Shown here: one piece after another, positions 3,256 through 46,418 of the stretch
How positions within the stretch are numbered: position 1 is the first letter of the stretch
How the letters are laid out: every line of letters starts with the position of its first letter
Virus record (IMG/VR): IMGVR_UViG_3300009514_000001
Coordinates: 1-64,000 of that record
Length of the DNA stretch: 64,000 nt
Strand: one strand, 5' to 3'
Position numbers and translations under genes: made by a program
The notes under the pieces: model-generated
Databases searched by the model: none
The model's input: only the letters and a program-made list of their open reading frames with translations
What the model was told of the DNA's origin: nothing

Positions 3256-3287
3256 AAAGGGGCTGCTCACAACCGAGAGGCAACACC

Positions 3288-5827: not shown

Positions 5828-5830
5828 CCC

Positions 5831-6433: not shown

Positions 6434-6446
6434 GCTTGGAGGCCGT

Positions 6447-12104: not shown

Positions 12105-12201
12105 CGCCCCGCCCCGGCGGGGTCCTTTTCGATCTTTGGGGGTCCTCCGGGGGAGGACCCCACGCCGTATGAGTCCGATAGCGCCGCAACAGGAGAACCC
12201 C

Positions 12202-13614: not shown

Positions 13615-14658
13615 ATGAGAAAGCCCTCTGTCGACAAATTCCAAGGATGCCTCATTGGGTGCGCTGTCGGAGATGCCGTCGGCGCTCCCGCGGAAACCTG
13701 GGGACTGCGAGAGTGTCAGACCTACGTCAAGACCAAGGTCGGACCCATGGCCTTTGAGAGGGTGTTCCGGACGTCCAGAAAGGGCGAGCGAGTCCCCTTC
13801 GGACAGTACACCGACGACACCCAGCTCACCCGAGAGCTGATCTCGTCCATCCTCGACCGCGGCGAGGTCGACCCTGAGCACTACGCCGATATCCTCGTGG
13901 ACCTGTTCGGTAACCGCAACCCGGTCGGTACCGGACGAGCCACTAGAGCGGCCGTCACCCGCCTCTATCAGGGAGTCCCCTGGGACGAGGCAGGAACGCC
14001 CTCGCCATCCGCGGGCAACGGCTCGGCCATGAGGGCCGCCCCCGTCGGCCTGCTCCACTGGAACACCAGGCCGAAGCGTATCAAGAACCTGGTCGAGGAC
14101 GCCGAGGCCCAGGGCATCATCACGCATGCCAACCCCGTGTGTACCGCGGGGGCCGTTGCCCTCGCCACTGCCGTCAAACAGGCCCTCTCGCCCGCCCCTC
14201 CGAACACGCTACGCTGGTGGAAGGACCTGGCGGAGGGGGTGTCCTGCGTGGACCACAACGCCTACGACGACGTCCCGATGGACGAACTTATCCTGAGCCT
14301 GTGGAAGCGCCGTGAGGCCAAACCCGAGGACATCAGGACCTGGCTGATGGACATCACCCCAGACTTCGGCACCAAGTGGCGGGGTATCAGCTCCTGGGTT
14401 GTCTCCAGTGTCCTCTGGTCTCTGTACGCATTCCTCCGGACCCCGGACGACTTCTGGATGACCATCCAGACGGCTATCTGGCCGGGAGGAGACGTCGATT
14501 CGACCGCGGCCATGGCAGGGGCCATCAGCGGCGCCTACAACGGCCTGGGAGCCATTCCCGAGGACGTGGCCAGGCAGGTCAACGACGACGGCTCCCAGGG
14601 CTATGAGGAGCTGTGTGAGATGGCCAGCAAACTCCATCAACGAACAGTAGGAGGCTAG
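13615..14658 (+). CDS. ADP-ribosylglycohydrolase (ARH/DraG family)
   Basis: AVGDAVG, YTDDTQ, GNGSAMRAAPVG and GGDVDSTAAMAGAISGA motifs. Confidence 0.92.
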   Translation: MRKPSVDKFQGCLIGCAVGDAVGAPAETWGLRECQTYVKTKVGPMAFERVFRTSRKGERVPFGQYTDDTQLTRELISSILDRGEVDPEHYADILVDLFGNRNPVGTGRATRAAVTRLYQGVPWDEAGTPSPSAGNGSAMRAAPVGLLHWNTRPKRIKNLVEDAEAQGIITHANPVCTAGAVALATAVKQALSPAPPNTLRWWKDLAEGVSCVDHNAYDDVPMDELILSLWKRREAKPEDIRTWLMDITPDFGTKWRGISSWVVSSVLWSLYAFLRTPDDFWMTIQTAIWPGGDVDSTAAMAGAISGAYNGLGAIPEDVARQVNDDGSQGYEELCEMASKLHQRTVGG

Positions 14659-17287: not shown

Positions 17288-17644
17288 ATGGAGCTGAGGG
17301 AGTCCCCAATGGCCTGGAAAGTGGTTTACGATGGACGACGTGGGCAGAGTCTCCACCCGGTTGAGAAGCCGGCGCCCGAGTGCGTCTCGCCCCACTGTGA
17401 CTGCAAGACACAGTGGCCCAAGCCCTCTTGGGACAACCATCTGGGGTTTCGCTACGCCGATCACAGCAACCATTGGGAGGTCCGAGATGCCGCCCTAGCC
17501 CTGGACAACCGGGCTGAACGGGCGGTTCCATCCCTGTGGCTCGCCCACATGGAGGAGATCGGCCGCCCCGTGAGACAGGTCTCTTGGAGAGGGGCCCACG
17601 GCAAAATCCCGAAATTCTACAGAAGAAGAGGACAAGAGCAATGA
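17288..17644 (+). CDS. Hypothetical protein
   Basis: GAGG RBS; ATGA overlap with the ligase N-half. Confidence 0.55.
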   Translation: MELRESPMAWKVVYDGRRGQSLHPVEKPAPECVSPHCDCKTQWPKPSWDNHLGFRYADHSNHWEVRDAALALDNRAERAVPSLWLAHMEEIGRPVRQVSWRGAHGKIPKFYRRRGQEQ

Positions 17645-18756
17645 ACAAGAGCGCGCTCACCAGGAAGATTGAAGATGCCAGAAAGGCCTACTACGGACCT
17701 AACGCCCCTCTCATGACGGATGCCGAGTACGATGCTCTCGAAGACGAGCTTCGCCTCCTCGACCCCGAGCATTACCTGCTCATGACAACAGGGACTCCTC
17801 CTGGCGACAGCGGCTGGGAGAAGGTCTCCCACGGCATCCCGATGCGCTCACTCAACAAGGCCCAGGTCTTCGATGAGATGGGCACCTGGTTCAAGAGCCT
17901 GGGACAGGTCCCCTGCCCACCTCTGGAACCCTCTCTGGTATTGACCGAGAAGCTCGACGGGATCTCATGCTCCCTCCAGTACATCAAGGGCCGACTCGTC
18001 TCGGCCCTGACCCGAGGTGACGGTGCCGTGGGTGAGGATATCACCCGCAACGTCAGTCTGATGAAGGGCGTTCAACACCGGCTGCCGAAAGGACCCTATG
18101 AGAACTGGAGCGGCCACCTCCGAGGTGAGATCGTCTGTCGCCGGTCCGACTTCGAGAAGCACTTCAAGGGCTACTCGAATCCCCGGAACACGGCGAGCGG
18201 GACGGCCAAACGTGAGAGCGACCCGGAGCCCTGCAAACACCTGACGGTCATCGTCTACCAGATGGTTCCCGAGGGCGGCTACATGATTTCGAAGATGACG
18301 GAGCTGGAGACCATCCAGAGCCTCGGGTTCATCGCCCCCAACTACGTTGGCCTGAAGTTCGACCGCATCGAGTCCATCTACCGAGGGTACGTTGACGACC
18401 AACGGGAGCTGTTGGACTACGACATCGACGGCCTGGTCATCGAGGTCAACTCCCAGTCCTTCGCTGAGGACCTCGGCGAGCTGAACAAGAGACCCAAAGG
18501 TGCCGTCGCGTTCAAGTTCCCCCACGACTCCAAAGAGACTACCCTGGAGCGCGTCGAATGGCAGGTCGGCAACACCGGCCGCATCACGCCGGTGGCGGTG
18601 TTCAAGGCGGTCAACCTGGCCGGTGCCAACGTTACCCGGGCAAGTCTCCACAACGTGTCCTACGTCAAGTCACTCAATCTCCACGAGGGCGACAAGATTC
18701 TCGTCAGCCGACGAAATGACGTCATCCCGGCCGTAGAGTCCAACCTCTCAAGGTAA
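17641..18756 (+). CDS. ligA: NAD-dependent DNA ligase, N-terminal half (Ia + adenylation + OB domains)
   Basis: YY..D.EYD.L, EKLDG, RGDG..GEDIT, NPRN.ASG, DIDGLV, WQVG.TGRITPVA and RASLHN; stops right after VIPAV. Confidence 0.93.
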   Translation: MNKSALTRKIEDARKAYYGPNAPLMTDAEYDALEDELRLLDPEHYLLMTTGTPPGDSGWEKVSHGIPMRSLNKAQVFDEMGTWFKSLGQVPCPPLEPSLVLTEKLDGISCSLQYIKGRLVSALTRGDGAVGEDITRNVSLMKGVQHRLPKGPYENWSGHLRGEIVCRRSDFEKHFKGYSNPRNTASGTAKRESDPEPCKHLTVIVYQMVPEGGYMISKMTELETIQSLGFIAPNYVGLKFDRIESIYRGYVDDQRELLDYDIDGLVIEVNSQSFAEDLGELNKRPKGAVAFKFPHDSKETTLERVEWQVGNTGRITPVAVFKAVNLAGANVTRASLHNVSYVKSLNLHEGDKILVSRRNDVIPAVESNLSR

Positions 18757-29432: not shown

Positions 29433-29734
29433 GGTACACAAACTGTACCCGCTAACTTAACAATTTCTGTCTAAATCTCACTTTTTCTCGGTAGTGTAGT
29501 TATACCAACCCCCTAAGTAGGTGAAGGTCATGATGAGGAAAGCCATGATTGTCCGAGTTACCGCAACCGAGTTTGAAACTGACCAGGGGAGGGTGTTCCC
29601 GCACCCTGTCCCCTTTGAGGAAGATCAGGTGCCTTCCGTCGAGGACTTCCAGAAATGGTACGACCATTGGTTTGCCCTTTTCTGCGATGAGTTCTCGGGA
29701 GAGAGAATCGCCGTGCTGCCAAAGAGAGGAGAGG

Positions 29735-30361
29735 ATGCCGAAGAAGGATAAACTTCTGTCTCTCGGCAAAGCCTCCACTTTGCTAGGTCTTCACCCAAAC
29801 ACACTCCGCAACTGGAGTAATGAGGGGAAGATCAAGTCCGTCCGAACGCCTGGGGGTCACCGTAAGTTCCCCCTCTCGGAGGTCCAGAAGCATATGGGGC
29901 TGGAGTCCTCTGAGGATCAACCAGGAAACCGCACCGCCATCTACTGCCGTGTCAGCAGTCACGACCAGAAGAAAAAAGGTGATCTAGAACGCCAGGCGGG
30001 CCGGGTGAGTTCTTACTGCGTCCAGAAAAGCTACCAGGTGGTTGATGTCCTCCAAGATGTCGGGTCTGGTATGTCTGAGAATCGACCTCGTTTGCGTAAG
30101 CTATTCAAGTTGGTGGACGACCACCAAATTGACCGGGTGGTCGTCGAGCACAAGGACCGCCTGACCCGGTTCGGTTTCGGTCTCTTGCAAGCCTACTTCG
30201 GGAGTCACGGAGTGGCCATCGAGTGGACAGAGGAGACTCTGGGGAAATCCTACGAGGAAGAGTTGGTGGAGGACATCTTGTCCCTCATGGCGTCCTTCTC
30301 CGCCCGCATCTACGGCAAGCGTTCCGCTGAAAACAGGAAGAAAGCCCAGGATAATAAATGA
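29735..30361 (+). CDS. tnpA: IS607 serine-recombinase transposase
   Basis: MerR-like HTH (LGLHPNTLRNW..RTPGGHR), then IYCRVSS.DQK..DLERQ and EHKDRLTRFGF. Confidence 0.93.
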   Translation: MPKKDKLLSLGKASTLLGLHPNTLRNWSNEGKIKSVRTPGGHRKFPLSEVQKHMGLESSEDQPGNRTAIYCRVSSHDQKKKGDLERQAGRVSSYCVQKSYQVVDVLQDVGSGMSENRPRLRKLFKLVDDHQIDRVVVEHKDRLTRFGFGLLQAYFGSHGVAIEWTEETLGKSYEEELVEDILSLMASFSARIYGKRSAENRKKAQDNK

Positions 30362-31080
30362 AAATGAGAGTCTGTATCCCATATTTCGGCGCGAAGTTTA
30401 TGAGAGCACCTCACTACCCGGCCCCTCAACACGACACCATTGTGGAGCCTTTTTGTGGGGGTGCGGGTTATTCTCTGAGACATCACATGAAAAAGGTGAT
30501 TCTATTTGACAAGAGTGAGTACGTCGTTGGTGCCTGGAGGTTCCTTCTCAGATCTCCAAAAAAAGAAATACTCAATTTGCCCCTTCTGGAACCTGGTGAG
30601 GACGTATCCGATCTGAGCATCTGCCAAGAGGCAAAGTGGTTGATCGGGTTTTGGATCAATCAGGGATCTGCGGTTCCGAAGAGGACTATGGGGGGCAGGC
30701 GGTCAAATAGAAGATTCGGAACCTGGGGAGATGCTGCCCGTCAGCGACTTGCTGACCAAGTTGGATCCCTTCGTCACTGGGAAATAAATCAGGGGAGTTA
30801 CACAGAAGTGCCTGATATTAAAGCGACTTGGTTTATAGACCCTCCATACCAAATCCAGGGTAAACATTACCCCCACCGCATCGGGGACTATACGGGTTTG
30901 GCTTTATGGTGTCGGAGCCGAAGAGGTCAGGTGATGGTGTGCGAAAGTGAAGGCGCAGACTGGCTTCCTTTCTCTCCTGTCACAACTGTCGTCGGTGCCA
31001 CGCACCGAAAGACAACCGAAGTTCTCTGGACAAACAAAAACGAGGCATTGGTTCCTCCTATCCACAAGGTGGATAAGTAG
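30358..31080 (+). CDS. Dam/D12-class N6-adenine DNA methyltransferase
   Basis: YFGAK, IVEPFCGGAGY (motif I) and FIDPPY (motif IV). Confidence 0.85.
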   Translation: MKMRVCIPYFGAKFMRAPHYPAPQHDTIVEPFCGGAGYSLRHHMKKVILFDKSEYVVGAWRFLLRSPKKEILNLPLLEPGEDVSDLSICQEAKWLIGFWINQGSAVPKRTMGGRRSNRRFGTWGDAARQRLADQVGSLRHWEINQGSYTEVPDIKATWFIDPPYQIQGKHYPHRIGDYTGLALWCRSRRGQVMVCESEGADWLPFSPVTTVVGATHRKTTEVLWTNKNEALVPPIHKVDK

Positions 31081-31082
31081 TT

Positions 31083-32346
31083 ATGTCTGTCGTCCAAAGG
31101 GCATACAAGGTTGAGATCGACCCCAATAACAAGCAACGCACCGCTCTGCGGTGCCGCTCTGCGGTGCCACGCTGGTTGTGCCAGGTGGGCATTCAATTGG
31201 GGACTCTCCCGTAAAATCGAGTCCTACAAGGAGACGAGGAAGTCCCCGAACAACATCGAGCTTCATCGGGAGTTGAATAAGCTCAAGAGGGCCGACCCAG
31301 AGAACGGTGGAATTCCCTGGATGTACAACGTCTCGAAGTGCGCACCACAGGAAGCTCTCCGAGACCTGGATAAAGCGTTCAAGAGCTTCTTCAGACGCTG
31401 TAAGAAGGGGGCCAAGAGAAAAGGTTTCCCTCGGTTTAAATCTCGTCGGAAGAGTCCCCTCAAATTTCGCCTCACAGGGGCTATCAGGACTTCCGAAGAC
31501 GGCAAACAGATCAAACTCCCCAACTTGGGGTGGATCCGGCTCAAAGAGACCGGGTACCTCCCAGGACCCGAGAGGAAAGAAGTGAAAATCCAGTCGGCAT
31601 CACTCTCTGAGCGAGCCGGAAGGTGGTTCGTTTCTCTGACCTGTAAAGTAGAGGTTCCTGATACCGCACCACGACCGAGAACCAAAGTCGTTGGGGTGGA
31701 TGTTGGAATCAAATCTCTTGCGGTGACGAGCGACGGACAGGTGTTCGAGAATCCGAAAGCCCTGGCTCGTGTGCAACGCCGCTTGCGGCGAGCACAAAAG
31801 GCACTGGCTAGGAAACAGAAGGGCAGTAGGAATCGGGAGAAGGCACGTAGGAGAGTTGCGAAGCTCTACTATCGGGTGTCGTGCATCCGACAAGATGCTC
31901 TACACAAAGCCACCAGTGAGATCGTGAAGGGCGCAGATGTAGTCTGCATCGAGTCCCTGAACGTCTCTGGGATGTTGAAGAACAGGAAACTCTCTCGTGC
32001 TCTTTCTGACGCATCCCTGTCGGAGTTCTTGCGTCAGTTGGCCTACAAGGCTGAGTGGGCCGGTGTTGAGGTGGTAGAGGCCGACAGGTTCTACCCATCG
32101 AGCAAGACCTGTTCTGGGTGTGGTCACGTCAAACAGGACTTGTCTTTGTCTGATCGTACCTACTCTTGTGGGGAGTGTGGTTTGGTGATGGACCGAGACC
32201 TGAATGCCGCAATCAATTTGAAAAACTTGGCCCCGAGTTCCGGGGTGTCAGCCTGTGGAGAGAATGTAAGACCCCAGTCGGAGCTTGCTCGGGTTGGGGC
32301 TATCTCTGCGAAACAGGAACCGAACACAGGAGCTACACCATGTTAG
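31083..32346 (+). pseudogene. tnpB: TnpB RNA-guided nuclease, frameshifted by a 13-bp duplication at 31141-31166
   Basis: GVDVG, CIESL and DRDLNAA RuvC residues and the Zn ribbon are intact; removing one CCGCTCTGCGGTG restores MSVVQRAYKVEIDPNNKQRTALRCHAGCARWAFNW. Confidence 0.88.
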
Positions 32347-32471: not shown

Positions 32472-33197
32472 ATGAACCACCGAACTGGCGATCCCGTCTC
32501 CATCCCCCAGGGCAAGGGTTCTCTGAGGGAAGACCTCGTGCGCCGCCTGAATAACGTTGCCCTGGACATCGAGATGTACAGGGAGGGCTTAGACATCGAC
32601 GAACACGTCGCCCTCGACTTTGCCCAACGCTGCGACGTGATTTGTGGTCTTCTCAAGAGGGACAAGGAACCACCATCACCCTTCGCCCAGTTTGTTGACC
32701 CGGCCCTCTTCTGGGCGGCGGTAGCGCAAGGATGGAGTCTTCAGACCAAGGTCGACAATCTCCTCCACGTCGTTGTTCTCGGTCCGACTGGGGTCCCGTA
32801 CGTTCGTACCGACGACTTCGACTCGCCTTTCTTGGCTAAACCGAAAATGTCCTCCCAGTACCCGATCATCGGCATCTGGGTCGTCCGCGACGTGAACGGA
32901 GTTGAGGGGAGTCCCTATTGGGACGAGTTCGCCGGCAACAGCGAGTATACCGTCGTTCGACTGGTCGACGGTGGTGTTGGCATCGTCAGCACCGACTATG
33001 AACGATCCGGTCCCGGGAGACACCGCGTACGGAGGTATTTCAAGGACGAAAAGAGGGGTGAATCCGTCGAGGGCCCACTGAACGCCACCGCCTCGACCAC
33101 CTGGCGCACCTACGAGAATGGCCAAGGAGATGCCTACGGGAGACTCCTCAAGAAGGCCAAGGCCCGGGTGAGGTGTCCGGGGCATGAGATCGCCTAG
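32472..33197 (+). CDS. Hypothetical protein
   Basis: 241-aa ORF. Confidence 0.55.
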   Translation: MNHRTGDPVSIPQGKGSLREDLVRRLNNVALDIEMYREGLDIDEHVALDFAQRCDVICGLLKRDKEPPSPFAQFVDPALFWAAVAQGWSLQTKVDNLLHVVVLGPTGVPYVRTDDFDSPFLAKPKMSSQYPIIGIWVVRDVNGVEGSPYWDEFAGNSEYTVVRLVDGGVGIVSTDYERSGPGRHRVRRYFKDEKRGESVEGPLNATASTTWRTYENGQGDAYGRLLKKAKARVRCPGHEIA

Positions 33198-33225
33198 GTC
33201 CACTTCGGTCCCTCCGGCCGTATAA
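33197..33225 (+). promoter_or_regulatory. Putative phage promoter GGTCC-N18-GTATAA
   Basis: Exact spacing; upstream of the PARP-like gene. Confidence 0.65.
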
Positions 33226-33265
33226 CAGGGTGGAAGCAAACCACCCTTGTCGAGAGGACAAACCG

Positions 33266-35011
33266 ATGGCCAAGGCCGACAAACTCAAGCGAAAGCTCCT
33301 CCCCCCCAACCACACTGCTGCCGACTTCCAGTACAGGGGTCGGCCATCGACTGATGTGGGCGACTTCGGCGAGGACGTGGGTATCGCTGACGGAGCTTGC
33401 GTCAACCAGTTCGGCGATGACGGCTCCGACAAGGGCCGCAACAACTGCAAGTACTACCACGGCGGCGTCGTCCAGAGTACCAAGGACAACTCCTGGTGGT
33501 GCTACTTCCAGTACGGACGCATCGACGACAGTGGCGAAAGCTGGACGGCCCCCTACTCGAACCCGGCGAAGGGTGGCGACTTCCGCGGCGGAGACTTCCA
33601 GTTCTACGGATGCGAGAGCGAGGCCCACGCGCGCAAAGAGTTCGCCGCCCAGATGAGGAAGAAGTCCACGAACCGCCTGGAGAGGAAAGACCTCGGCGGT
33701 GGCGTGAAGGTCTGGGTCTCGAAGACCGACAAGAACGGCAAGAGCAAGGATGGCTACATCATCCAGGCCTTGGCCACACGGACCCGAGGCCTCCCCGACG
33801 CCTACACCATCAAGGACGACACCGGAGTCACCATCAAGGACGACACCGGAGTCGCCGAGGCGAAGGCGAAGCCCAAGAAGAAGACCAAGCGAGCGTCTTC
33901 GGCCCCCAAGGTCCACCCCCAGGTCGTCAAGCTCGCCCAAGACCTCGTGGGTGGTACCAAGACCTTCGCCCGGGCTGCCGCGGCGGCCACGGGTGTCACG
34001 CCCACCCTGGCGGCCATCACCGAGGCTCGCGACGTCATCATCCCCCAGGCGCTCCAGCTCCTCGCCAAGATCGGAGATGACCTCGACGCCCAGCTCAACG
34101 ACAAGAACCTCCAAGGACTGTCCCGCTACATGGCCGGGCGCATCCCCGTCATCATCCCTCGTGGAGCCACTCAAGAGGACCGGGCCAAGATGCTGCTCCT
34201 CTCCAAAGACACCATCATGGAGCGCCAGCAGGACCTCGACGCGTTCGAGGCCGCCCTCAAGTCTGAGGACTTCGAGACCGAAGGGGACTCCCCGGTCGTC
34301 GACTACAACGCCATGCTCGGCGCCCTGGTCGACTGGATTGACCCCCAGAGCGAGTTGGGAAGGTGGTTGGAACCCACATTCCGGGCGATGTCGAACAATC
34401 GTCACTACAACAGTAGGGGACGTCTGGTCATCAAGAACATGTTCAAGGTGGTTCGGCCGGACAGGGACGCCCTTTTCGTGGCTGCGACCAAGAAAGTCGC
34501 TGCCAAATGTCGGGGAAGAGTCGACCTCAAGGCGCGTCTCCAGCCACCAGCCAGGCCCGATGTGTCGGACATCTCGGACGAATACGACCAGGCCAACGTG
34601 TTCCTGGGCATCCACGGAACCCGGGCTGTGAACATCCACCCCATCATGTCGACGAACCTGAGACTTCCAAAGTCTCTCAGAGGAGTCGTAATCACCGGCA
34701 GTGCCTTCGGATCGGGTATTTACGCAGCTTCCGACTGGAAAAAAAGCTATAATTATTGTGGGCTTAGCAGCTCCTACTACGGGGGTGGAGGTACGATTTC
34801 GGGCCGCGGGTTCTTCATGTTCCTCCAGGACATCATCATGGGCCAGGCATACAAGGCCCGATCCGTGGGTTCTTGGCAGACTCCTCCCAACGGGTGTGAC
34901 TCCATCGCGGCCTACCCGGACTTCATGAGGACGCTTCAGAACGACGAGCACATCATCTTCGACCCGTCGTATCAGCGTATCCGATACCTCATCGAAGGGG
35001 AGATTCACTAG
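33266..35011 (+). CDS. PARP-like ADP-ribosyltransferase with WGR and helical regulatory domains
   Basis: YFQYGRI (WGR-like), helical middle, IHGT, GSAFGSGIYAAS..KKS.NY, FMFL.D...G and LQNDEHIIFD..Q.IRYL (H-Y-E triad). Confidence 0.85.
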   Translation: MAKADKLKRKLLPPNHTAADFQYRGRPSTDVGDFGEDVGIADGACVNQFGDDGSDKGRNNCKYYHGGVVQSTKDNSWWCYFQYGRIDDSGESWTAPYSNPAKGGDFRGGDFQFYGCESEAHARKEFAAQMRKKSTNRLERKDLGGGVKVWVSKTDKNGKSKDGYIIQALATRTRGLPDAYTIKDDTGVTIKDDTGVAEAKAKPKKKTKRASSAPKVHPQVVKLAQDLVGGTKTFARAAAAATGVTPTLAAITEARDVIIPQALQLLAKIGDDLDAQLNDKNLQGLSRYMAGRIPVIIPRGATQEDRAKMLLLSKDTIMERQQDLDAFEAALKSEDFETEGDSPVVDYNAMLGALVDWIDPQSELGRWLEPTFRAMSNNRHYNSRGRLVIKNMFKVVRPDRDALFVAATKKVAAKCRGRVDLKARLQPPARPDVSDISDEYDQANVFLGIHGTRAVNIHPIMSTNLRLPKSLRGVVITGSAFGSGIYAASDWKKSYNYCGLSSSYYGGGGTISGRGFFMFLQDIIMGQAYKARSVGSWQTPPNGCDSIAAYPDFMRTLQNDEHIIFDPSYQRIRYLIEGEIH

Positions 35012-35226
35012 CTGGAGTGCTCGGTCACTCTAACCGCCCAGTCCAGGAACTCTTGGACTGGGCGGTTCCGTTTCATGCGGTTACACCTGCTGCAACAAGG
35101 AACACAGTTGTCCACCTCATAGCCTCGGTCGTTATCGACCCGGTCGATGCCTGAGGCACGCAAGACGGGGGTTATCTCCTGTGCCCGATCTGTCGTGCCG
35201 AGCGCCCCGCGCCCTCCTGATTGCAC
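35008..35226 (-). pseudogene. HNH endonuclease fragment
   Basis: GIDRVDNDRGYEVDNCVPCCSRCNRMK. Confidence 0.7.
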
Positions 35227-35229
35227 TTG

Positions 35230-35747
35230 AGACGGGGCGTTCGTCGTTCTTGACGACGACTCAGCGAGTTTGCATACTTGGCGAGCAATCAGGAGGCCGC
35301 CTTGAGGAGGCGTTCGACATCCAGGTCCAGTGCTTCGACCCGGAGGCCGTCGCCCGTCTCAACCGCATCTCGAAGGAGACCGGGGCCGAGTTCGTGCTCA
35401 CGACCAACTGGCGGCGACGCATCGGACCTGAACGCCTGGTCCGAATCCTCAAAGCCATCGGCGTCATGTTCGATGGCCTGGTGTTCCAGACCGGAGTCCG
35501 GTTCAGCCACCAGGAGCGCTCCGACGAGATTCTCGGGTGGCTCAACGACAACCACGGCAAGCTCAACATCGAGAGCTTCGTCATCCTGGAGGACCTCCAC
35601 CCGATGCGCCAGCTTGAAAGGATGACCGTCAGGACGGACGCCCGCTGGGGTCTCCGCGAGAACCACGTCGAGAAGGCCATCGACATCCTCACCGAGTCCT
35701 CGAATGAGGACTGGCTCCCTCTTCTCAACGCCCCGGAGTTCTACTGA
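35230..35747 (+). pseudogene. HAD_SAK_2-like (HAD superfamily) protein lacking a clear N-terminus
   Basis: DPEAVARLNRI..TGAEFVLTTNWR, RSDEI..WL, FVILED and GL.E.HVEKAIDIL; no intact DxDGV start found. Confidence 0.6.
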
Positions 35748-36423: not shown

Positions 36424-37389
36424 ATGATGTCTCTCTCCCCGAAAGAACTGGTCGAACACTCCATTACCATCGCCGAGGAGTACCGGCGTCAGGGCCTCAA
36501 CCTGACCCTACGCCAGCTCTACTATCAGCATGTCGCTAGGGGCCTCACGGGCTCCGGGCAGAAGGTCTACAACCGCCTGGGGGCCGCCCTGACCAAGGCC
36601 CGCTACGATGGCAGGTTCCCGGTCGAGTGGCTCTGCGACCGGGGGCGGTCTGTAGAGTCCTCTCAGTCGACGGGCCACAACGTGAAACCCGACTCCGCGA
36701 TGGTCCAGGCTGAGCGCATCATCGGCGACCTTCCACACTGGCTACTCAAGTCTGAGCGCTGGGTGGGCCAGCCTATATACGTTTCGGTGTGGGTCGAGAA
36801 GGAAGCCCTGGCGGGGGTGTTCGAGCCCGTCACTCAACAGTTGGGCGTCGGCATGTTCGCCTGCAAGGGATACCCCTCTGTCAGCGCCCTGTACCAGTGG
36901 CTCGAACAGGCCGACCGAGCCGCCCAGGGCATCTGGGACGACGGTCACGACCACTTCGAGGGCCACGCCGAGAGAGCGGTGGTGCTCTACTTTGGCGACC
37001 ACGACCCTGATGGCTTCGAAATTCCGAGGTCGGCCAAGCGCAACCTCGACAAGCTGGTCAACGTCACCCGGTTCGATCCCGGGCCCATCGAGTTCCGGCG
37101 CATCGCCCTGAATATGGACCAGATTCGCCAGTACTCCCCACCCCCGTTCGAGGCCAAGACCACCTCCTCACGCTACGCCACCTACCGCGTAGAGCACGAC
37201 ACCGAGGACGCCTGGGAGCTGGATGCCCTGGAGCCGACGGTCCTTCGCGATCTCATCAGGACCAACGTCCGGGCCTTGTTCGACCAGGACATCTATGCGG
37301 ACAACCAGGACCTGGTTCGAGAGGCTCGCGAGGAGATGCGTGAGCGCATGGCCGACATCGAGTGGCTCGAAGAGGTCGTCGGAGACTAG
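36424..37389 (+). CDS. Topo VI-A/Spo11-like TOPRIM-domain protein
   Basis: TLRQLYY, VWVEKEAL, GDHDPDG and WELDAL. Confidence 0.75.
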   Translation: MMSLSPKELVEHSITIAEEYRRQGLNLTLRQLYYQHVARGLTGSGQKVYNRLGAALTKARYDGRFPVEWLCDRGRSVESSQSTGHNVKPDSAMVQAERIIGDLPHWLLKSERWVGQPIYVSVWVEKEALAGVFEPVTQQLGVGMFACKGYPSVSALYQWLEQADRAAQGIWDDGHDHFEGHAERAVVLYFGDHDPDGFEIPRSAKRNLDKLVNVTRFDPGPIEFRRIALNMDQIRQYSPPPFEAKTTSSRYATYRVEHDTEDAWELDALEPTVLRDLIRTNVRALFDQDIYADNQDLVREAREEMRERMADIEWLEEVVGD

Positions 37390-37886: not shown

Positions 37887-37936
37887 CCAGCCCTCCTCAA
37901 GTCTCTACAGAGTACCAGGCGATAGAGAGACAAGTG

Positions 37937-37965
37937 GGTCCACTTTCGGACCCGGTGTCGTATGG
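37937..37965 (+). promoter_or_regulatory. Putative phage promoter GGTCC-N18-GTATGG in front of the cas operon
   Basis: Exact spacing, 23 nt before the GTG start at 37988. Confidence 0.6.
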
Positions 37966-37987
37966 AGGGCTACGAGGTGAGGAAAGA

Positions 37988-39985
37988 GTGAGAGACATCT
38001 ACGCCAGGCCGGGACAGCTTCTTTACGACCACCTGCTGGGTGTCTGTCGAAAAGCTCTCCCAAAGGCAGCTCGACTCAATCTTGAAAAGCCCCTGTTTGA
38101 CCTGATTGTGAGCCACGATTTAGGTAAGGCTTCATTTCTCTGGCAGCAAGGATTGCAGAGAGGAGACAGACCCCTGCCTGACCACGTCTCCGCAGGGGCT
38201 AAGGTACTTCTCGACAGAGGGAGTCCGCTATTCCTGTTGTCGCATAGCCACCATGGTAGTCTAGGCAGTCTCGCGGCTTGTCGCCCCCAAGTAGGGGAGT
38301 TCTCAGTACCCGAAGAAGTTCTGATTTGGCTCTCTGATAACGCACCGAGGCTGGCTAGTGAAGTCCACCAAGAGCTGGGCCTGGGTGTTGAGTTCGGCAG
38401 GGAGAACAACCCCTGGTGGCTGGAAGACACCCCAGAACAGGTCTCTCTTCGTCTACGGCTCCTCTTCTCCCTTCTTGGAGACATGGACATCCAAGATGCT
38501 AGGGAGTTCGACACAGGAGAACGCCAGAATCATCACGGAGTGCAGGAGCTTCACCAGAGGTTCTTGGAGTGGGTCGACAACAGTCCCTCAACTGTCGTCT
38601 CCGAAGCCCTAGCGTTCGCCCGGCACCCCCCCGGTAGGTACCGCATCACATCCCCCCACCCCATCGGCAAGACGACTGCGGGGCTGGGATACGGACTGGC
38701 CCATGCGAGGGCGCACGACCTGGACAGGGTCGTTCTGGTCGCCCCCTACCTTTCCCACCTACACCATCTGGAGGAGCGTCTCACAGACCTCTTCGGAGAG
38801 CGACTGGTCTCTAGTTCAGTTCTCCAGCACCACACCGGGATAGCCACTTCCGAGTTGTCTCCTTGGGCCAAGCCGCTCATCCTGACTACCTCGGCCCAGT
38901 TCTGGGGGACCCTCAACCATCACCATAAGATGGCCCTCCGCAACGTCCACTATCTCTCCCACAGTGTCGTCATCCTCGACGAGAACCAGGCTCTCACCTC
39001 TCGCCTTCACGACCACTATGAAAGCACCCTGAACCTGATGCGGGATGAGTGGGGGTGTTCGATTGTGCAGACAGGACAAACTATCCGTGCCCGCTCAAGA
39101 GAGATGCCAGCCCGCCTGTCGTCTTCCTCAGGGACAGATAATCGGTCGTCCACCCTACTAGGGGAGGTGGAGTGGTCTGCTGTTGCCTCACGGGCTAGTG
39201 AGTCGACCAGAGCAATGGTTGTCACCAACACCATCGCCGATGCTCTGGAGGTGGCCAGCCACATGCCGGAGGGAACTGTGTGCCTGACCAGTCGCCTCTG
39301 CTCGCGAGACCGACAGGACATTGGACACCGCCTCCGCCTCCGAACACAAGAGGGCCCCCTGAGAGTGGTTGCGACTCCCCTGACGGAGACAGACACCGGG
39401 ATGCTCTTCGGTCTCGTGTTGAGGGCCATGTGTGGAGCGGGGTCCCTGCTCCTTTCACGGGCACACCTCCTCCCCGGAGGGGAGATGGGCATCTTCACCT
39501 CGACACCCCCAAGGGCGGCTGGTCGGGATGCCGCTATTACCCAGAGGCTTCTCCAAGACCCCTGGCAGCTCACAGACTCGGACTGGCTGGCCGAGTACTA
39601 CGACCAAGTCTTAGCGACAGGAACCGTCAGCTCCGACCTCGTCAGAGCGGCCCATGAACTCGACTTCAGAGGAGCATCCAGAGCCTTCAGGCTCATCTCA
39701 GATAACAAGACCAACATCCTGCTCGTGAGACACCCCAACGTTGACATCCAAGATGAGATTGACTCCGTATTGGGAGGCCTGAGGTCCCCCTCACCAAGGA
39801 TACGGCGAAAAGCGCGTCGAGACGCCCTGAGATACTCCGTGCCCCTTTCTGAGTATGAGTTGAACTCTGCTAGGAACCAGGGCCTTATCGGAACCCTCGC
39901 CACACATCTGGAATGTGACCTCGAAACACCCATCTGGCTAGGGGGCTACGACGACACAAGTGGAGGACTTCGTTTTTTCTCTTGA
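37988..39985 (+). CDS. cas3: Type I-C Cas3: intact HD domain, degenerate SF2 helicase
   Basis: DHL, SHDLGKA, DHVSAG and SHHG (HD); SPHPIGKTT, ILDENQ, VTNT, ATPLTETDTG and SLLLSRAHL (eroded helicase motifs). Confidence 0.88.
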   Translation: MRDIYARPGQLLYDHLLGVCRKALPKAARLNLEKPLFDLIVSHDLGKASFLWQQGLQRGDRPLPDHVSAGAKVLLDRGSPLFLLSHSHHGSLGSLAACRPQVGEFSVPEEVLIWLSDNAPRLASEVHQELGLGVEFGRENNPWWLEDTPEQVSLRLRLLFSLLGDMDIQDAREFDTGERQNHHGVQELHQRFLEWVDNSPSTVVSEALAFARHPPGRYRITSPHPIGKTTAGLGYGLAHARAHDLDRVVLVAPYLSHLHHLEERLTDLFGERLVSSSVLQHHTGIATSELSPWAKPLILTTSAQFWGTLNHHHKMALRNVHYLSHSVVILDENQALTSRLHDHYESTLNLMRDEWGCSIVQTGQTIRARSREMPARLSSSSGTDNRSSTLLGEVEWSAVASRASESTRAMVVTNTIADALEVASHMPEGTVCLTSRLCSRDRQDIGHRLRLRTQEGPLRVVATPLTETDTGMLFGLVLRAMCGAGSLLLSRAHLLPGGEMGIFTSTPPRAAGRDAAITQRLLQDPWQLTDSDWLAEYYDQVLATGTVSSDLVRAAHELDFRGASRAFRLISDNKTNILLVRHPNVDIQDEIDSVLGGLRSPSPRIRRKARRDALRYSVPLSEYELNSARNQGLIGTLATHLECDLETPIWLGGYDDTSGGLRFFS

Positions 39986-40079
39986 CGAGAGTCAGAGAAA
40001 GCCCTTGCCTTTCCGACCACGGGAACACCCGGGGAACTATTAACAACACAATGTGGTTGAGGCGAAAATTGAGGCGAAA

Positions 40080-40754
40080 ATGAACCTGAGAAAACTACTC
40101 AGCGACCCTGTGAGGGTCAAGGTCACAGGCAGAAGAGGCCTCTTTTCGCGCCATGACTTTCCTACGGAGAGGATTTCATACCCTATCATGACCCCCAGTG
40201 CCGCCCGGGGGCTGCTCAGAAGGATATACGGAAAACCTCAGCATTTCTGGGTGATACAGGCGGTTCAGGTGCTGAATCCAATTCGGTTCGAGAACATCAC
40301 CTACAACGAGGTGAGACTCCCGAAGAGACCTGTTCCTGTGAATGTTAGCAATACATCTCAGGTCCGTATTCAGAGGTCTGCCCAGGTTCTCATAGAGCCC
40401 TCCTACATCATCGAGGCACGGGTTCTGGTGCATCCCTATGCGTACAGGAACGGAGGCATGCCCACCAAGCACACGGAACAGCTCAAGAGACGTCTGAAGA
40501 GGGGCCAGTTCTTCCTCCAACCCGATCTCGGCAAGAGCGAGTTTTTCGCTGATTGTTCTTTGCCGGACGGCAGCGAGAGTCCCCTTCCAGTGAGCCAGGA
40601 CCTCGGCCGTATCCCTCTCTTCGTCGATCAGAGCGAAGGGCGCTCGCACTACTTCCAGGCCTTCATGAAGCGGGGTGTGGTGCAGGTGCCGCAGAAGCAG
40701 CTTCTGGACGTCCTGGAGCCGAAACTCCTCGACCAAGACCCTTGGAGAACGTGA
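40080..40754 (+). CDS. cas5: Type I-C Cas5 (Cas5d, crRNA-processing)
   Basis: ERISYPIMTPSAARG.L..IYGKP..W.I..V.VLNPIRF..I..NEV; TKH..Q..RR..RGQ.F.QP.LG..EF. Confidence 0.92.
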   Translation: MNLRKLLSDPVRVKVTGRRGLFSRHDFPTERISYPIMTPSAARGLLRRIYGKPQHFWVIQAVQVLNPIRFENITYNEVRLPKRPVPVNVSNTSQVRIQRSAQVLIEPSYIIEARVLVHPYAYRNGGMPTKHTEQLKRRLKRGQFFLQPDLGKSEFFADCSLPDGSESPLPVSQDLGRIPLFVDQSEGRSHYFQAFMKRGVVQVPQKQLLDVLEPKLLDQDPWRT

Positions 40755-42655
40755 TGTACAATCTCATCCGAGAACTCACCAAAGTACGGGTGCCCTCGAC
40801 GTTCCCGGGCCCTGGGTATCTCCTCAGAACTGCCAACGTGTTCTGTCACCTAGACAGATCGGGATTCTCTCACTGGGAGGTCAAGAAAGAGGGTGAGCTT
40901 TACATGCTCCCCGACTCTGGACGTACAGGGACGGGTACAAAGGTCGGCCTGTGGGGTGACCAGGTGAGGGTCTACACCGGGAACAAGGAGACCAAGAAGG
41001 CCCGGGCCAAGAGAGAGGCCGCGAACAAGGCGAAGGGGAGAGACAACTCCAACGACTTGGCGGTTGCAATGGCCAAAGCTGTGAGCGAGGCCCACAATCG
41101 CATCAAGGGCCGCGCCGGAGAGGACACCAGGCTGAGTCTCGTCTACACATTTCTCACGGACGAGAGTCAGCGTCAGCGGGCTTACGATGCCCTTCCGGAT
41201 GACGTGAACCCGAACAGTCCTGTCGTCCTTGTTGTCGAGGGGAGGACGATGGTCCGTCCCCAGGAAGGTCCCTGGGCATCTCCGAACATCGACCTCTACG
41301 AGGAAGAGGGCAAACGCATTGCCTGGGTAGGCAATCTCAAGACCGTCGAGGGGGTGTGTAGCGTCACAGGCGAAAAGGACCTCATCCCCGACATCCACCC
41401 TGGGTCCGTGAAGATTGGTGACTCCAGAGCCCAGCTACTTTCCGGAAACATCCCCCAACACTTCCCCAATCCCAAAGGCAAGCTGTGGAGCACTGGCATC
41501 GGCCTGGAGGCTGCCCAGCAGTACACGACCGCCCTTGACTACCTGACGACGGACAAGAACCACCACCTGACGGCCCTCCACACCACGACCAAGAACCCCT
41601 CCTCCAGCGACTTCCAGAAGATAGTCTGGTGGGGCCGGGACGAGGACGCCTCCCTTCCTATCTACCAGAGCATTATCCGCCCCTCTGCGGAAGTCCGCAC
41701 GGCTATCGAGGAAGCCCTTGAGGGGAGGGGAGGTCCGGTCAACCTCGAACACCCCTTCAACACACTCGTCCTAGGTACCCACGTCAGACGCCTGGTGGTG
41801 CTCAGCATGTCGAGCGATACCCTCCTGGGTGTCTACCAGAGTGCCAGTCGATGGCTGAGAATGACCGAGACTCTCAGCGTTGATGAAAGGGGCGCCCTTG
41901 CCCGGAAAAACCACTCTCTCAAGGCCCTGTCGAGGGCCCTTCTGCCCCGCTCAAAGGAGGGTGAGTGGTTCGGTAAGTGCTCTCCCTACACGACGCAGGA
42001 CATCCTGAGGTCCATGCTCTTTCGGGAGCCCCTCACCAAGAGGCTCATCCACGGCCTGATGACTCGTCTCGAACGTGACCAACAGCTAACCACCGCCCGC
42101 ACAGCCCTCTTGCAGGTCTACCTACACCAACGAGGAATCATGGCTGACAAGACCCAAGCCCGAACCCCCATCGACCCGGAACTGGGAGGGTACGTCGGAT
42201 ACAATCTCGGACGTCTCCTCCAAGAGGCGACGGCCATCCAAAAGGCGGCAATCCGAGTCAATCGGGACTTGAGTTCCACCCTCTCATCCTACGCCAAGAA
42301 CCACCCCCGACGGCTGTACGACAAAACCACTCAGAAGGCGGACAATCACTTGACCTCTCTCAGGACCAAAGGGGACTACGGACTGGCCTCAATGTTCGAG
42401 AAGCGCCTGGGGGCCATCATCGGACGCATCTCTATGGTGCCGAAACAACTTCCCGAGGAGCAACTCGCACTGTTTCGCAAGGGACTGCGGGATCAGTATC
42501 TGGCCTCCCAGGCCGCCAACAAAAGACGATCTCAACTTAACAACGAGGACATCGCCAAGGACGAACTCGCATACCAGAAAGCGCAGGTCGACCTGACTCT
42601 AGGTCTCATTGACCCGGAGGACTGCCCTGCACCACCCACCACCGACAAGGAGTGA
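40754..42655 (+). CDS. cas8c: Type I-C Cas8c large subunit
   Basis: CSVTGEK...HP, AAQQYTTALDYL and C-terminal GYNLGRL..Q..A; TGATG coupling to cas5. Confidence 0.82.
   Translation: MYNLIRELTKVRVPSTFPGPGYLLRTANVFCHLDRSGFSHWEVKKEGELYMLPDSGRTGTGTKVGLWGDQVRVYTGNKETKKARAKREAANKAKGRDNSNDLAVAMAKAVSEAHNRIKGRAGEDTRLSLVYTFLTDESQRQRAYDALPDDVNPNSPVVLVVEGRTMVRPQEGPWASPNIDLYEEEGKRIAWVGNLKTVEGVCSVTGEKDLIPDIHPGSVKIGDSRAQLLSGNIPQHFPNPKGKLWSTGIGLEAAQQYTTALDYLTTDKNHHLTALHTTTKNPSSSDFQKIVWWGRDEDASLPIYQSIIRPSAEVRTAIEEALEGRGGPVNLEHPFNTLVLGTHVRRLVVLSMSSDTLLGVYQSASRWLRMTETLSVDERGALARKNHSLKALSRALLPRSKEGEWFGKCSPYTTQDILRSMLFREPLTKRLIHGLMTRLERDQQLTTARTALLQVYLHQRGIMADKTQARTPIDPELGGYVGYNLGRLLQEATAIQKAAIRVNRDLSSTLSSYAKNHPRRLYDKTTQKADNHLTSLRTKGDYGLASMFEKRLGAIIGRISMVPKQLPEEQLALFRKGLRDQYLASQAANKRRSQLNNEDIAKDELAYQKAQVDLTLGLIDPEDCPAPPTTDKE
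42140..42655 (+). CDS. cas11: Cas11c small subunit from an internal in-frame start in cas8c
   Basis: GAGG-AATC-ATG in frame, just before the Y.LGRL C-terminal domain. Confidence 0.6.
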   Translation: MADKTQARTPIDPELGGYVGYNLGRLLQEATAIQKAAIRVNRDLSSTLSSYAKNHPRRLYDKTTQKADNHLTSLRTKGDYGLASMFEKRLGAIIGRISMVPKQLPEEQLALFRKGLRDQYLASQAANKRRSQLNNEDIAKDELAYQKAQVDLTLGLIDPEDCPAPPTTDKE

Positions 42656-42659
42656 AAGA

Positions 42660-43613
42660 ATGGACGTCAAGTGTATCAACCCAAAGACCCGCCACGATTT
42701 GCTAATCACCTTCAGCGTCACCCGAGGCAACCCCAACGGAGATCCGGATGCCGGAGGAGCGCCCCGAGAAACCCAGGATGGCTATGGCATCGTCACCGGT
42801 GAGAGCATCAAGCGCTTGGTACGGGATGCCGCGGAAGAGGTCTTCGAACAGAAGATTTACATCCGGTCCGGACCGCCCCTAGAGGAGGCTCTGTTGAAGG
42901 CCGTCGAGCGAGCCTACAACGGAGACTCCTCCGAAGCTCCCCGTGACAAGAAAGGCAACCTCCTGGTGGCCCAGGTACCAAAGGACAAAATCCAGGCCAT
43001 CCTCGACGAACTGAGATCGTACTTCGACAACCGCATGTTCGGAGCCGTTTTCGCCAGTCAGAAAGTCCCTGTCGGACGATTCCGAGGACCCGTAGCTATC
43101 GGAGATGCCCGGTCCTTCGATGAGATCGTAGTCCGAGAAAATCGCCTCACTCGGGTCGTCTCCGCCAAGTCCGATGAGGGCAAGGACCGAACCGGCCAGG
43201 GCACCTTCGCGGAGCGCTACGCCGTCGACTTCGGCTTCTACGAAAGCTTCGGCAGCTTCAGCCCCCACGGCTCTGGCAAGCACGTCTCCGAGGAGGACCT
43301 CAAGGTGCTCTTCCAGTCTCTCGTCACGGGGTTCCAAGAAAGCGCCTCCGCCCGTCGTGGGGGCTCCTACCAGGTTCACCGCATCTACGTGTTCACGCAC
43401 GACAACGCCCTGGGTAACGCCTCCCAGCACGATCTCCGCAAAGTCGTCAAGGTGACCAAGCGGAAAGACGTGGATAGTCCCCTCTCCCTCGACGACTACC
43501 TCGTCGAAGTGAACCGAGGTGCCATCCCCAAAGGAGTTCACCTGAGCATCATCGACAACAGCAACGTCCTGGACCCGCAGGCCTGGTACGTCGACAGCTC
43601 CCGTCCTCGATAG
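42660..43613 (+). CDS. cas7: Type I-C Cas7 (Csd2)
   Basis: GNPNGDPDAGG.PR, G.VT.ESIKR.VRD, FDNRMFGAVF, RGPV and HDNALGNA. Confidence 0.95.
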   Translation: MDVKCINPKTRHDLLITFSVTRGNPNGDPDAGGAPRETQDGYGIVTGESIKRLVRDAAEEVFEQKIYIRSGPPLEEALLKAVERAYNGDSSEAPRDKKGNLLVAQVPKDKIQAILDELRSYFDNRMFGAVFASQKVPVGRFRGPVAIGDARSFDEIVVRENRLTRVVSAKSDEGKDRTGQGTFAERYAVDFGFYESFGSFSPHGSGKHVSEEDLKVLFQSLVTGFQESASARRGGSYQVHRIYVFTHDNALGNASQHDLRKVVKVTKRKDVDSPLSLDDYLVEVNRGAIPKGVHLSIIDNSNVLDPQAWYVDSSRPR

Positions 43614-43789
43614 TACCCGTTCGAACACCCCAGTGATGAGGAGACCCCTAGGGGTGCTCGAACGATAATGAAATCAATAGGTTGGATGCACTTTTGAGAG
43701 CCTCCCATCTTGTTCTTTGATAAGTGAATTAGGGGTGCTCGAAAACAGTACTCCAACTACCTAAGAACACTAGCTTTTGGGCTAGTGCG
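43614..43789 (+). promoter_or_regulatory. CRISPR leader
   Basis: AT-richer region with CGTTCGAACACCCC/GGGGTGCTCGAACG inverted repeat and a second AGGGGTGCTCGAA. Confidence 0.7.
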
Positions 43790-45473: not shown

Positions 45474-45527
45474 CTTCGAGCCCCTTCAACTGCAACCAAG
45501 CCACCCCACGAGGAAGGATTACAACCA

Positions 45528-46418
45528 ATGGCTACTGCAACTATGACCAACACCGTTCCCACCGTCGACTCCGTACTCCAGGGCACCTCCAACTGGAGGG
45601 ACGCCGCCTTCGAAGCCTGTAAGTTCTACGTCGACCAAGGCCAGTGCTTCAGCTCCGGCGAGGTCGCCCGAGACCTTCGAACGCACCGGACCGATCTCAA
45701 GTTCTCCGTCATGGGTGTCGGAGAGTACCTCCGCGACCTGTTCTACGGCGGAGGGATGCCTGACTACCAGGCCCTCGGCATGACCATGCCTGTTCAGCAG
45801 GTCGGCCGAACGACCACCGGCAAGGGGCGGACCCCGGCGGGCCGAGACGTCTTCGTCTACTGCCCTGACCCAACTGAGGGCTACAACCACGACTTCGAGG
45901 TCGACATCCCTCGTCCCCCGGTTGATGGCGGGTTCGTCGCAACCGGCATCCTTCCAGGACGCGTCTCGGCGACGAGACCTACCGGAGCGCCGGCTCTGAC
46001 CCCCGTTCCGGTGGGCGCGACTCCTTCGGGCATCCACCCGCCGCACCAGTCGACCTACACTCGCCAGCCGACGGCCAAGGCCGCCAACATCACTGGCAAG
46101 GCTCCAAAGAAGGACCCCGAGGCCAAGGTCCACACCGACCGCCGCCTCTGCATCTCCCGCAACGCCTTCGAGGCCTTCGTCCACCTGACAAAGACGCCGA
46201 TGAAGGGAGGTGACCCGATTTACCTCTCCTTCGACGGAGACACAGCCACCGTCACCCTCGACCAGGTTCCCGGGTCCAAGCCCTACAGCCTGGCCACGGA
46301 GAGGGGACGCATCCTGTTCCCGTCGCCGAACAAGACCAAGTCCTTCGCTCCGGGCAAGACGACTCCGGTGACCATCACCGCCAAGAGTCTCTCGGTGAAC
46401 CTGGCGGACGTCTACTGA
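45528..46418 (+). CDS. Hypothetical protein
   Basis: 296-aa ORF with good codon usage. Confidence 0.7.
   Translation: MATATMTNTVPTVDSVLQGTSNWRDAAFEACKFYVDQGQCFSSGEVARDLRTHRTDLKFSVMGVGEYLRDLFYGGGMPDYQALGMTMPVQQVGRTTTGKGRTPAGRDVFVYCPDPTEGYNHDFEVDIPRPPVDGGFVATGILPGRVSATRPTGAPALTPVPVGATPSGIHPPHQSTYTRQPTAKAANITGKAPKKDPEAKVHTDRRLCISRNAFEAFVHLTKTPMKGGDPIYLSFDGDTATVTLDQVPGSKPYSLATERGRILFPSPNKTKSFAPGKTTPVTITAKSLSVNLADVY

Follow-up and report, generated by a model that had tools for sequence, protein, structure and literature searches.

A predicted PARP1/2/3-type ADP-ribosyltransferase in a divergent huge phage and its recurrent association with a partner gene and an ARH3-like hydrolase

The human enzymes PARP1, PARP2 and PARP3 share a common core (structures 4dqy, 7s6h, 6x0l and 7aeo) in which a WGR domain, a helical domain (HD) and an ADP-ribosyltransferase (ART) catalytic domain follow one another. 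The bacterial PARPs of Herpetosiphon aurantiacus and Clostridioides difficile CD160 likewise have a WGR-(HD)-ART layout with an H-Y-E triad (PMC4245714, PMC5966428, PMC8120803). DNA-dependent synthesis of poly(ADP-ribose) (PAR) was described for the Herpetosiphon enzyme (PMC4245714, PMC8120803) and activity was shown for the C. difficile CD160 enzyme (PMC8120803). A survey from 2014 collected 28 bacterial WGR-(PARP_reg)-PARP sequences, with Plesiocystis pacifica among the carriers (PMC4245714), and a survey from 2018 covered 72 sequences, many of which contain YGR in place of WGR and show a helical domain in models even if Pfam misses it (PMC5966428). PARP-family ARTs with the H-Y-E triad are also catalogued for phages, including Aeromonas phage Aeh1 and Cellulophaga phage phi4:1 (PMC4245714) and the PARTs of jumbo phages (PMC7824862), and PARPs rank with the viral ART families found most often (PMC9503650). 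Their predicted functions are the modification of host proteins or the sensing of DNA damage (PMC4245714, PMC7824862, PMC9503650, PMC11662467), and in 2024 a jumbo-phage 'PARP1' was proposed to act as a DNA-damage sensor alongside a NAD-dependent ligase (PMC11662467). No biochemical activity, trigger or target of any phage PARP and no linkage of phage PARPs to a partner gene or to an ADP-ribosylglycohydrolase (ARH) was described in the literature searched. Here, a PARP-family gene was analyzed that lies in the first 64 kb (positions 1 to 64,000, hereafter the window) of the IMG/VR virus record IMGVR_UViG_3300009514_000001. An earlier note, written from the sequence of the window alone, had read this gene as a phage-run, DNA-break-activated PARP of the eukaryote-like layout. 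This reading is reasonable but already in print, as the bacterial surveys, the phage listings and the 2024 sensor proposal precede it and the same reading was published for jumbo phages (PMC7824862, PMC9503650, PMC11662467).

The gene (P0001; 33266..35011 including the stop codon, + strand) was delineated from its open reading frame (ORF), Pfam and family-profile matches, a structural model and Foldseek. The ORF starts with an ATG at 33266, ends with a stop codon at 35009-35011 and encodes 581 aa. The N-termini of homologous proteins fit this ATG and not a GTG located 5' of it at 33230, and the sequence GAGAGGA (33252-33258), 7 nt 5' of the ATG, provides a ribosome-binding site. A 604-aa antisense ORF (33194-35008) overlaps the gene; given the GC content of 60%, an artefact of high GC is the best reading of this ORF. 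A blastn search of 50,697 phage records with the gene as query yielded no match.

Within the protein, a WGR domain (approximately residues 20-175; 33323..33790, + strand like the following segments) was recognized by Pfam, by the WGR stretch of the profile comparison with PARP1 and by Foldseek. A low-confidence basic linker (approximately residues 176-211; 33791..33898), with predicted local distance difference test (pLDDT) values below 50 at residues 187-200, connects this domain to an HD that is homologous to the PARP regulatory domain (approximately residues 212-345; 33899..34300) and carries a near-invariant D-L-D at 323-325. The ART catalytic domain (approximately residues 346-581; 34301..35008) contains H450, Y486 and E561 as well as K493, S494 and Y497. 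The Pfam PARP model matched the protein with 44.7 bits (cut-off 26.7; E 1.4e-11) and the WGR model matched at the borderline (22.3 bits with a cut-off of 22.0); across 44 diverse relatives, PARP was matched in 44 and WGR in 31 (best WGR E 7.7e-11). As Pfam PARP_reg matched no single family member among the 581-aa protein and the 44 relatives, the HD was established via profile and structure. The family profile (alignment A1) matched a human PARP1 WGR-HD-ART construct with E 3.3e-37 in three colinear stretches that correspond to WGR, HD (independent E-value 4e-08) and ART (4e-20). An AlphaFold2 model generated from A1 reached a mean pLDDT of 84.3 and a predicted template modelling (TM) score of 0.80, and its best Foldseek matches were PARP1 on a DNA double-strand break (E 2.9e-17) and PARP2 on DNA, with approximately 590 columns aligned. 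Residues 212-581 of the model (HD and ART) align to PARP1 661-1008 as a single rigid unit. The WGR-HD-ART layout claimed in the earlier note is thus borne out at the level of sequence, profile and fold, even though only two of the three Pfam models that it had named as a check, PARP and the borderline WGR, found a match.

The motifs that had been quoted for this protein are all present, namely YFQYGRI (80-86), DLDAFEAAL (323-331), HGT (450-452), GSAFGSGIY (478-486), KKSYNY (492-497) and NDEH (559-562). The apparent H-Y-E triad deduced from them holds: H450, Y486 and E561, which align to H862, Y896 and E988 of PARP1, are invariant in 148 of 148 full-length homologs, as are G451, N456, G482, K493 and Y497, and the NAD+ donor site is intact. 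In the WGR core of the same homologs K62, Y164 and R172 are invariant, R85 is found in 141 and G84 is nearly invariant, and position 83 is occupied by W in 130, by Y in nine (including this copy) and by F in seven sequences. The signature therefore reads Y83-G84-R85 here and W-G-R in most of the family. The WGR domain additionally carries a lineage-specific insertion at approximately residues 87-108. A perfect in-frame 24-bp tandem duplication (33805-33853; Tandem Repeats Finder) places the peptide TIKDDTGV twice at residues 181-196 of the disordered WGR-HD linker. In comparison to human PARP1/2/3, the phage protein is 15-21% identical, is devoid of zinc fingers and BRCT and displays approximately 20 extra conserved N-terminal residues, a family-specific loop at approximately 498-515, the YGR signature and a short loop before the catalytic Glu. 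The R-S-E motif of T4 Alt/ModA/ModB-type ARTs was not found; the triad is H-Y-E and the top structural matches are all PARPs. Typical PARP-domain proteins of 400-470 aa matched the phage protein in phmmer searches only in the ART domain (E approximately 1e-13), and the ART of Klebsiella phage 05F01 matched only HD and ART with 25% identity. Since Pfam, the family profile, the model, Foldseek and the conservation in 148 homologs agree, both the WGR/HD/ART architecture and the triad can be regarded as confirmed, and sequence and model make it very probable that the gene product is a PARP1/2/3-type NAD+-dependent ADP-ribosyltransferase.

Such enzymes had been called uncommon in prokaryotes and their viruses, which overstates their rarity in view of the abundance of this one family. 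A word-indexed metagenome search revealed at least 308 PARP-family clusters (90% identity) at E ≤ 0.001 among the scored candidates, and the best 120 of these 308 matches were all full-length and 47-83% identical. An exhaustive search of representatives at 50% identity returned 58 at E ≤ 1e-30, and IMG/VR contains approximately 40 full-length relatives, mostly on contigs of 200-620 kb. Among annotated phage records, the sole full-length match belongs to an uncultured 595-kb phage (34% identity over 98% of the protein). The close bacterial copies all stem from Nannocystaceae (Plesiocystis pacifica SIR-1, Enhygromyxa including E. salina, and Pseudenhygromyxa) and are full-length with approximately 50% identity. 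In a maximum-likelihood tree the family separates into clades A and B (support of 100/99 for both), and the Nannocystaceae copies form one clade (100/100) that is nested among clade-A phage sequences. The PARP of the window pairs with that of L088 (loci of relatives are designated by L numbers), followed by L003. The nesting suggests a transfer from phages to Nannocystaceae; this direction is only suggested by the sequences because the tree was midpoint-rooted, with seven distant PARP-domain proteins as the outside group.

The genomic surroundings of the PARP genes revealed a partner gene and an ARH gene, both of which the earlier note had overlooked. The partner of the window (P0270; 45528..46418, + strand) encodes 296 aa with a winged-helix-like N-domain, a disordered linker (138-193) and a MazE/AbrB/MraZ-like C-domain. 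It adjoins the PARP gene in relatives and is found 10.4 kb downstream here. In seven Nannocystaceae genomes, a gene of approximately 250 aa directly 3' of the PARP gene is the sole conserved neighbor, and an eighth genome also has the partner (8 of 8). These chromosomal homologs belong to the same family, and their other neighbors are not conserved. DUF2169 and VgrG genes occur 3' in Pseudenhygromyxa, and a link to type VI secretion was rejected as conservation of these genes does not extend to the other six Nannocystaceae loci. In clade-A phages the partner follows on the same strand, 0-3.2 kb 3' of the PARP gene, in 11 of 13 distinct loci; the window has it farther downstream, and L016 has none within 10 kb. 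Eleven clade-B loci contain a divergent partner (A3) that is homologous to the clade-A partner (A2) according to hhalign (probability 97%, E 3.3e-11, 212 columns); within clade B, no partner could be detected in one derived sub-clade, which comprises 11 loci, and in L040. The reverse test, starting from partner homologs on long contigs, found a PARP gene upstream in 4 of 4 cases at a distance of 20 nt to 2.5 kb; the eighth Nannocystaceae genome is one of these four.

The partner family comprises at least 156 members of approximately 250-300 aa, all labelled hypothetical and many located on the contigs of the PARP matches. No match was found for the partner in Pfam, NCBIfam or PADLOC, and neither Foldseek nor a sequence profile returned anything significant from the PDB. 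Its model (pLDDT 82) displays two confident domains joined by the disordered, variable linker. Residues 197-296 resemble SpoVT/AbrB, MazE, MraZ and SymE-type domains among AlphaFold DB clusters (E 2e-3 to 2e-2; probability up to 1.0; root-mean-square deviation 3.2-3.5 Å over approximately 96 residues), and a comparison of the C-domain with the ESM Atlas gave TM scores of 0.56-0.63 by the hit. Both halves of the swapped-hairpin domain of MazE, AbrB, SpoVT and MraZ are present in one chain, as in MraZ; in contrast to these proteins, the domain is fused via the disordered linker to a winged-helix-like domain and has no sequence-level match to them. Going by its model, the partner can most fittingly be called a predicted DNA-binding protein, and its family is undescribed. 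The phage PARP has this partner and no HPF1, and fold searches with the partner retrieved winged-helix and AbrB/MraZ-type domains and no HPF1.

The ARH gene (13615..14658, + strand; Pfam PF03747, E 4.2e-63) encodes an ARH3-like ADP-ribosylglycohydrolase and a candidate eraser of the modification. The protein aligned end to end with ARH3 chains (E 5e-15), while alignment with DraG was partial and that with the arginine-specific ARH1 was weak. ARH3 hydrolyzes PAR and serine-linked ADP-ribose. Of the records examined, 8 of the 9 from clade-A phages encode an ARH, as do 8 of the 11 clade-B records that contain the partner and none of five records without a partner, three of which are 98-100% complete. 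The background frequency of ARH in jumbo phages is approximately 5% (PMC9503650). Characterized bacterial PARPs pair with a PARG, whereas the phage family is accompanied by the ARH3-like hydrolase and the winged-helix/AbrB-like protein. The arrangement follows the same logic as the PARP1/2-HPF1-ARH3 serine circuit, with a writer, an accessory protein and an ARH3-type eraser, where a cofactor role of the partner would be by analogy.

These observations are explained best, and with somewhat better than even confidence, by a PARP1/2/3-type enzyme in a conserved module that would provide a reversible ADP-ribose signal at DNA breaks or ends. The WGR domain would bind a DNA break or end, the DNA-bound WGR domain would loosen an autoinhibitory HD and open the NAD+ site, and the activated PARP could then ADP-ribosylate itself and nearby proteins. 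The partner, with its winged helix and MazE/AbrB/MraZ-like barrel, may serve as a DNA-bound cofactor, a targeting factor or the main substrate, and the ARH3-like hydrolase would take the mark off. Such a reversible signal during infection could have its place in the replication or repair of phage DNA or in the handling of genome ends. The analogy with PARP1/2/3 and the DNA-dependent Herpetosiphon PARP points most simply to activation by DNA ends or breaks via WGR and HD, which we consider reasonably probable. The functional tie of the PARP to the partner and the ARH appears likely on the basis of their genomic association. Further context is provided by genes of NAD+ and DNA metabolism, as a NAD-dependent DNA ligase is encoded here (17536..18756, + strand) and also near the PARP gene in L003, L014, L017 and L021, and genes for NAMPT, NUDIX, PRPP synthase and UvdE adjoin the PARP gene in relatives. 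In L005, NAMPT and NUDIX genes (4144-6449) lie 5' and UvdE and NUDIX genes (10968-12303) lie 3' of the PARP gene, in L094 a gene for phosphoribosyl pyrophosphate (PRPP) synthase (2503-3450) separates PARP and partner, and in L092 a NUDIX gene (5853-6389) follows the partner.

Several findings weigh against this explanation. The counts of ARH and partner co-occurrence reflect shared ancestry and are not independent events, the PARP, partner and ARH genes are spread over 33 kb in this phage, and both the partner and the ARH have been lost from a sub-lineage of clade B. Because of this dispersal and loss, the PARP can evidently persist without the other two components. A search for PARG (PF05028) found no match in the 222-kb genome, and control genomes were equally silent. 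The nature of the product is affected as well. The H-Y-E triad is necessary and not sufficient for polymer synthesis, as PARP3 and PARP4 keep the triad and are nevertheless mono-transferases. The positions aligned to Y889, M890 and Y986 of PARP1 are A or S, A and N in the family (S, A and N in this protein), and the loop that leads to the catalytic Glu lacks approximately 26 residues relative to PARP1. Elongation of a polymer is for these reasons not assured; judged from the sequence, formation of a polymer by the phage PARP has slightly less than an even chance, and we lean slightly toward a short product (mono- or oligo-ADP-ribose).

In the partner- and ARH-less PARP sub-clade (L023, L025, L028, L030, L032, L034, L039, L041, L042 and L045), a Metallophos gene (calcineurin-like phosphoesterase) was always found within 10 kb, and this enzyme might be an alternative ADP-ribose-processing enzyme there. 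Metallophos genes also occur near the PARP gene in L036, L047 and L003.

The main rival to a reversible signal at DNA ends is a conflict module of the toxin-antitoxin, abortive-infection or superinfection-exclusion kind. The PARP would then be a latent toxin that acts once its WGR domain encounters foreign DNA ends, harmful through its use of NAD+ or through ADP-ribosylation of essential targets, with the partner as antitoxin or repressor and the ARH as antidote. Phage ART-ARG toxin-antitoxin pairs have been described (PMC9503650), the C-domain of the partner resembles MazE/AbrB/SymE-type folds that are typical of antitoxins, and PARP and partner genes lie close together, with gaps as small as 20-27 nt. 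Transfer of the module between phages and Nannocystaceae chromosomes apparently occurs, and other conflict genes lie beside it in the window (type I-C CRISPR-Cas, an IS607-like element and an HNH fragment). The details of the locus are less favorable to this view: the partner is large, is encoded downstream and not upstream and has a second (winged-helix) domain, and the gap of 10 kb between PARP and partner would be awkward for a strict toxin-antitoxin pair. Furthermore, no PADLOC 2.0 model matches PARP, partner or ARH, and a regulated WGR-HD architecture is a feature of signalling PARPs and not of constitutive toxins. A conflict module is accordingly regarded as improbable, at about one chance in several.

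Host takeover by mono-ADP-ribosylation of host proteins (for example, RNA polymerase or translation factors), independent of DNA damage and comparable to T4 Alt/ModA/ModB, was proposed for jumbo-phage ARTs and PARTs (PMC7824862), and the location of the gene in a + strand DNA-metabolism block with a common promoter-like motif would suit such a role. We consider it quite unlikely, since the fold and the H-Y-E triad are of the PARP type, a conserved WGR domain and HD would be superfluous for that role, and Nannocystaceae stably maintain their chromosomal copies together with this partner. PARP1, PARP2 and PARP3 are able to ADP-ribosylate DNA break termini in vitro, the phage PARP is paired with a protein of two DNA-binding-type folds and an RNA-repair-type phosphatase (HAD_SAK_2) adjoins it in the window and L088, but ADP-ribosylation of DNA or RNA phosphate termini instead of proteins, as genome-end caps or break marks, is the least probable of these alternatives and very unlikely, because ARH3-like erasers are best known for protein serine-ADP-ribose and PAR and the neighbors differ between phages.

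The source of the window is a 222,005-bp IMG/VR virus record of the class direct terminal repeats with a CheckV completeness of 42%. A TerL-like ORF (188443-190560 in the genome; tblastn) matches large terminase subunits of crAss-like phages (E 4e-7) and two uncultured huge phages of 485 kb (LR745208.1; 52% identity) and 595 kb with up to 52% identity; the 595-kb phage is the one that also gave the best annotated match of the PARP. No match to the Terminase_6N and Terminase_6C Pfam models was found in the genome, and ten of its mid-sized and large ORFs gave no match to PHROGs. The term 'phage' used in the earlier note is consistent with the terminal repeats and the TerL-like ORF, and its sequence identifies the element as a huge phage that has diverged very far. 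Outside the window, from 66 to 221 kb, the genome shows a long run of minus-strand ORFs that includes giants of 3789, 3604 and 2411 aa. NAMPT, Macro and Metallophos genes were absent from the genome of this phage, and a NUDIX ORF is present in the window at 59100-59633.

Upstream of the PARP gene, the sequence GGTCCA-N18-TATAAC (33197-33226, + strand) precedes the ribosome-binding site. A motif GGTCCAnTT-N14-CGTAyAA is common to three sites (9988, 21669 and 33197), each upstream of a + strand gene and all in the first 34 kb, and two of the three, including 33197-33226, have the GGTCCA-N18-TATAAC form. The 'own promoter motif' attributed to the gene is therefore only partly borne out, as a recurrent element, while a scan for the sigma-70 consensus upstream of the gene found no site; the shared motif may represent a phage promoter class that differs from the sigma-70 consensus. 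Directly 5' of the PARP gene, a 241-aa ORF (32472-33197, + strand) shows weak similarity over 41 aa to the corresponding ORF of L088 and has no match in Pfam, PHROGs, NCBIfam or PADLOC. Further upstream, an IS607-like element (29549-32346) consists of a MerR-HTH serine recombinase (29549-30361), a D12-class methyltransferase-like ORF (30358-31080) and TnpB/OrfB (31111-32346). This segment has a lower local GC content (0.53) and is missing from the syntenic L088, the closest relative with a PARP of 83% identity, from which an insertion of approximately 3.3 kb just 5' of the PARP region can be deduced.

At the 3' end, a 72-aa HNH endonuclease remnant (35008-35226, - strand) is convergent with the PARP gene and abuts its stop codon. 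L008 and L015 have comparable HNH pieces in this position, a pattern suggestive of a homing-endonuclease site where the PARP gene ends. In both the window and L088 it is not the partner but the HAD_SAK_2 phosphatase ('Swiss Army Knife' RNA-repair type; 35181-35747, + strand) that follows the PARP gene. Next are a 194-aa protein that matches the C-termini of many PHROGs of unknown function and is syntenic with L088 (35839-36423, + strand) and a 321-aa protein matching phrog_6247 ('DNA topoisomerase'; 36424-37389, + strand). The 10.4 kb between the PARP and partner genes contain a phage-encoded type I-C CRISPR-Cas interference locus (37934-45470) with Cas3c (37934-39985; PADLOC E 4.7e-72), Cas5c (40053-40754), Cas8c (40553-42655), Cas7c (42609-43613; above the NCBIfam cut-off) and a CRISPR array (43790-45470) of approximately 24 repeats of 36 nt that ends 58 nt before the partner gene. 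None of the flanking ORFs tested encodes Cas1, Cas2 or Cas4. Two ORFs (44277-44735, - strand; 44818-45546, + strand) are considered spurious because they lie inside the array.

PARPs of phages and bacterial PARPs of the WGR-HD-ART layout had been catalogued before, and a 'PARP1' damage sensor had been proposed for jumbo phages; the new elements are a PARP family that is common on viral contigs of 200-620 kb, its near-constant partner gene and the co-occurring ARH3-like hydrolase. A bolder and doubtful reading, which we put forward tentatively, is that PARP, partner and ARH are the three parts of an ancient, mobile system for reversible ADP-ribosylation that is native to huge phages and was passed once to Nannocystaceae, with the partner as a dedicated DNA-bound cofactor or substrate in a role like that of HPF1 or histones. 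The compact, soluble-looking WGR-HD-ART enzyme and its two candidate partners make DNA-break sensing in phages testable. A signal of this kind might be used in the repair of restriction or CRISPR cuts, in genome-end handling or in the exclusion of rival phages, and the partner bears on the question of how an accessory DNA-binding protein may tune a PARP outside eukaryotes. If the bolder reading is true, viruses of prokaryotes would have a counterpart of the ADP-ribose circuit that responds to DNA damage in eukaryotes, with a bearing on the origin of that circuit. Whether bacterial and phage PARPs descend from eukaryotic ones or the other way round is disputed, and the nesting of the bacterial copies within a wide range of phage sequences is relevant to this dispute.

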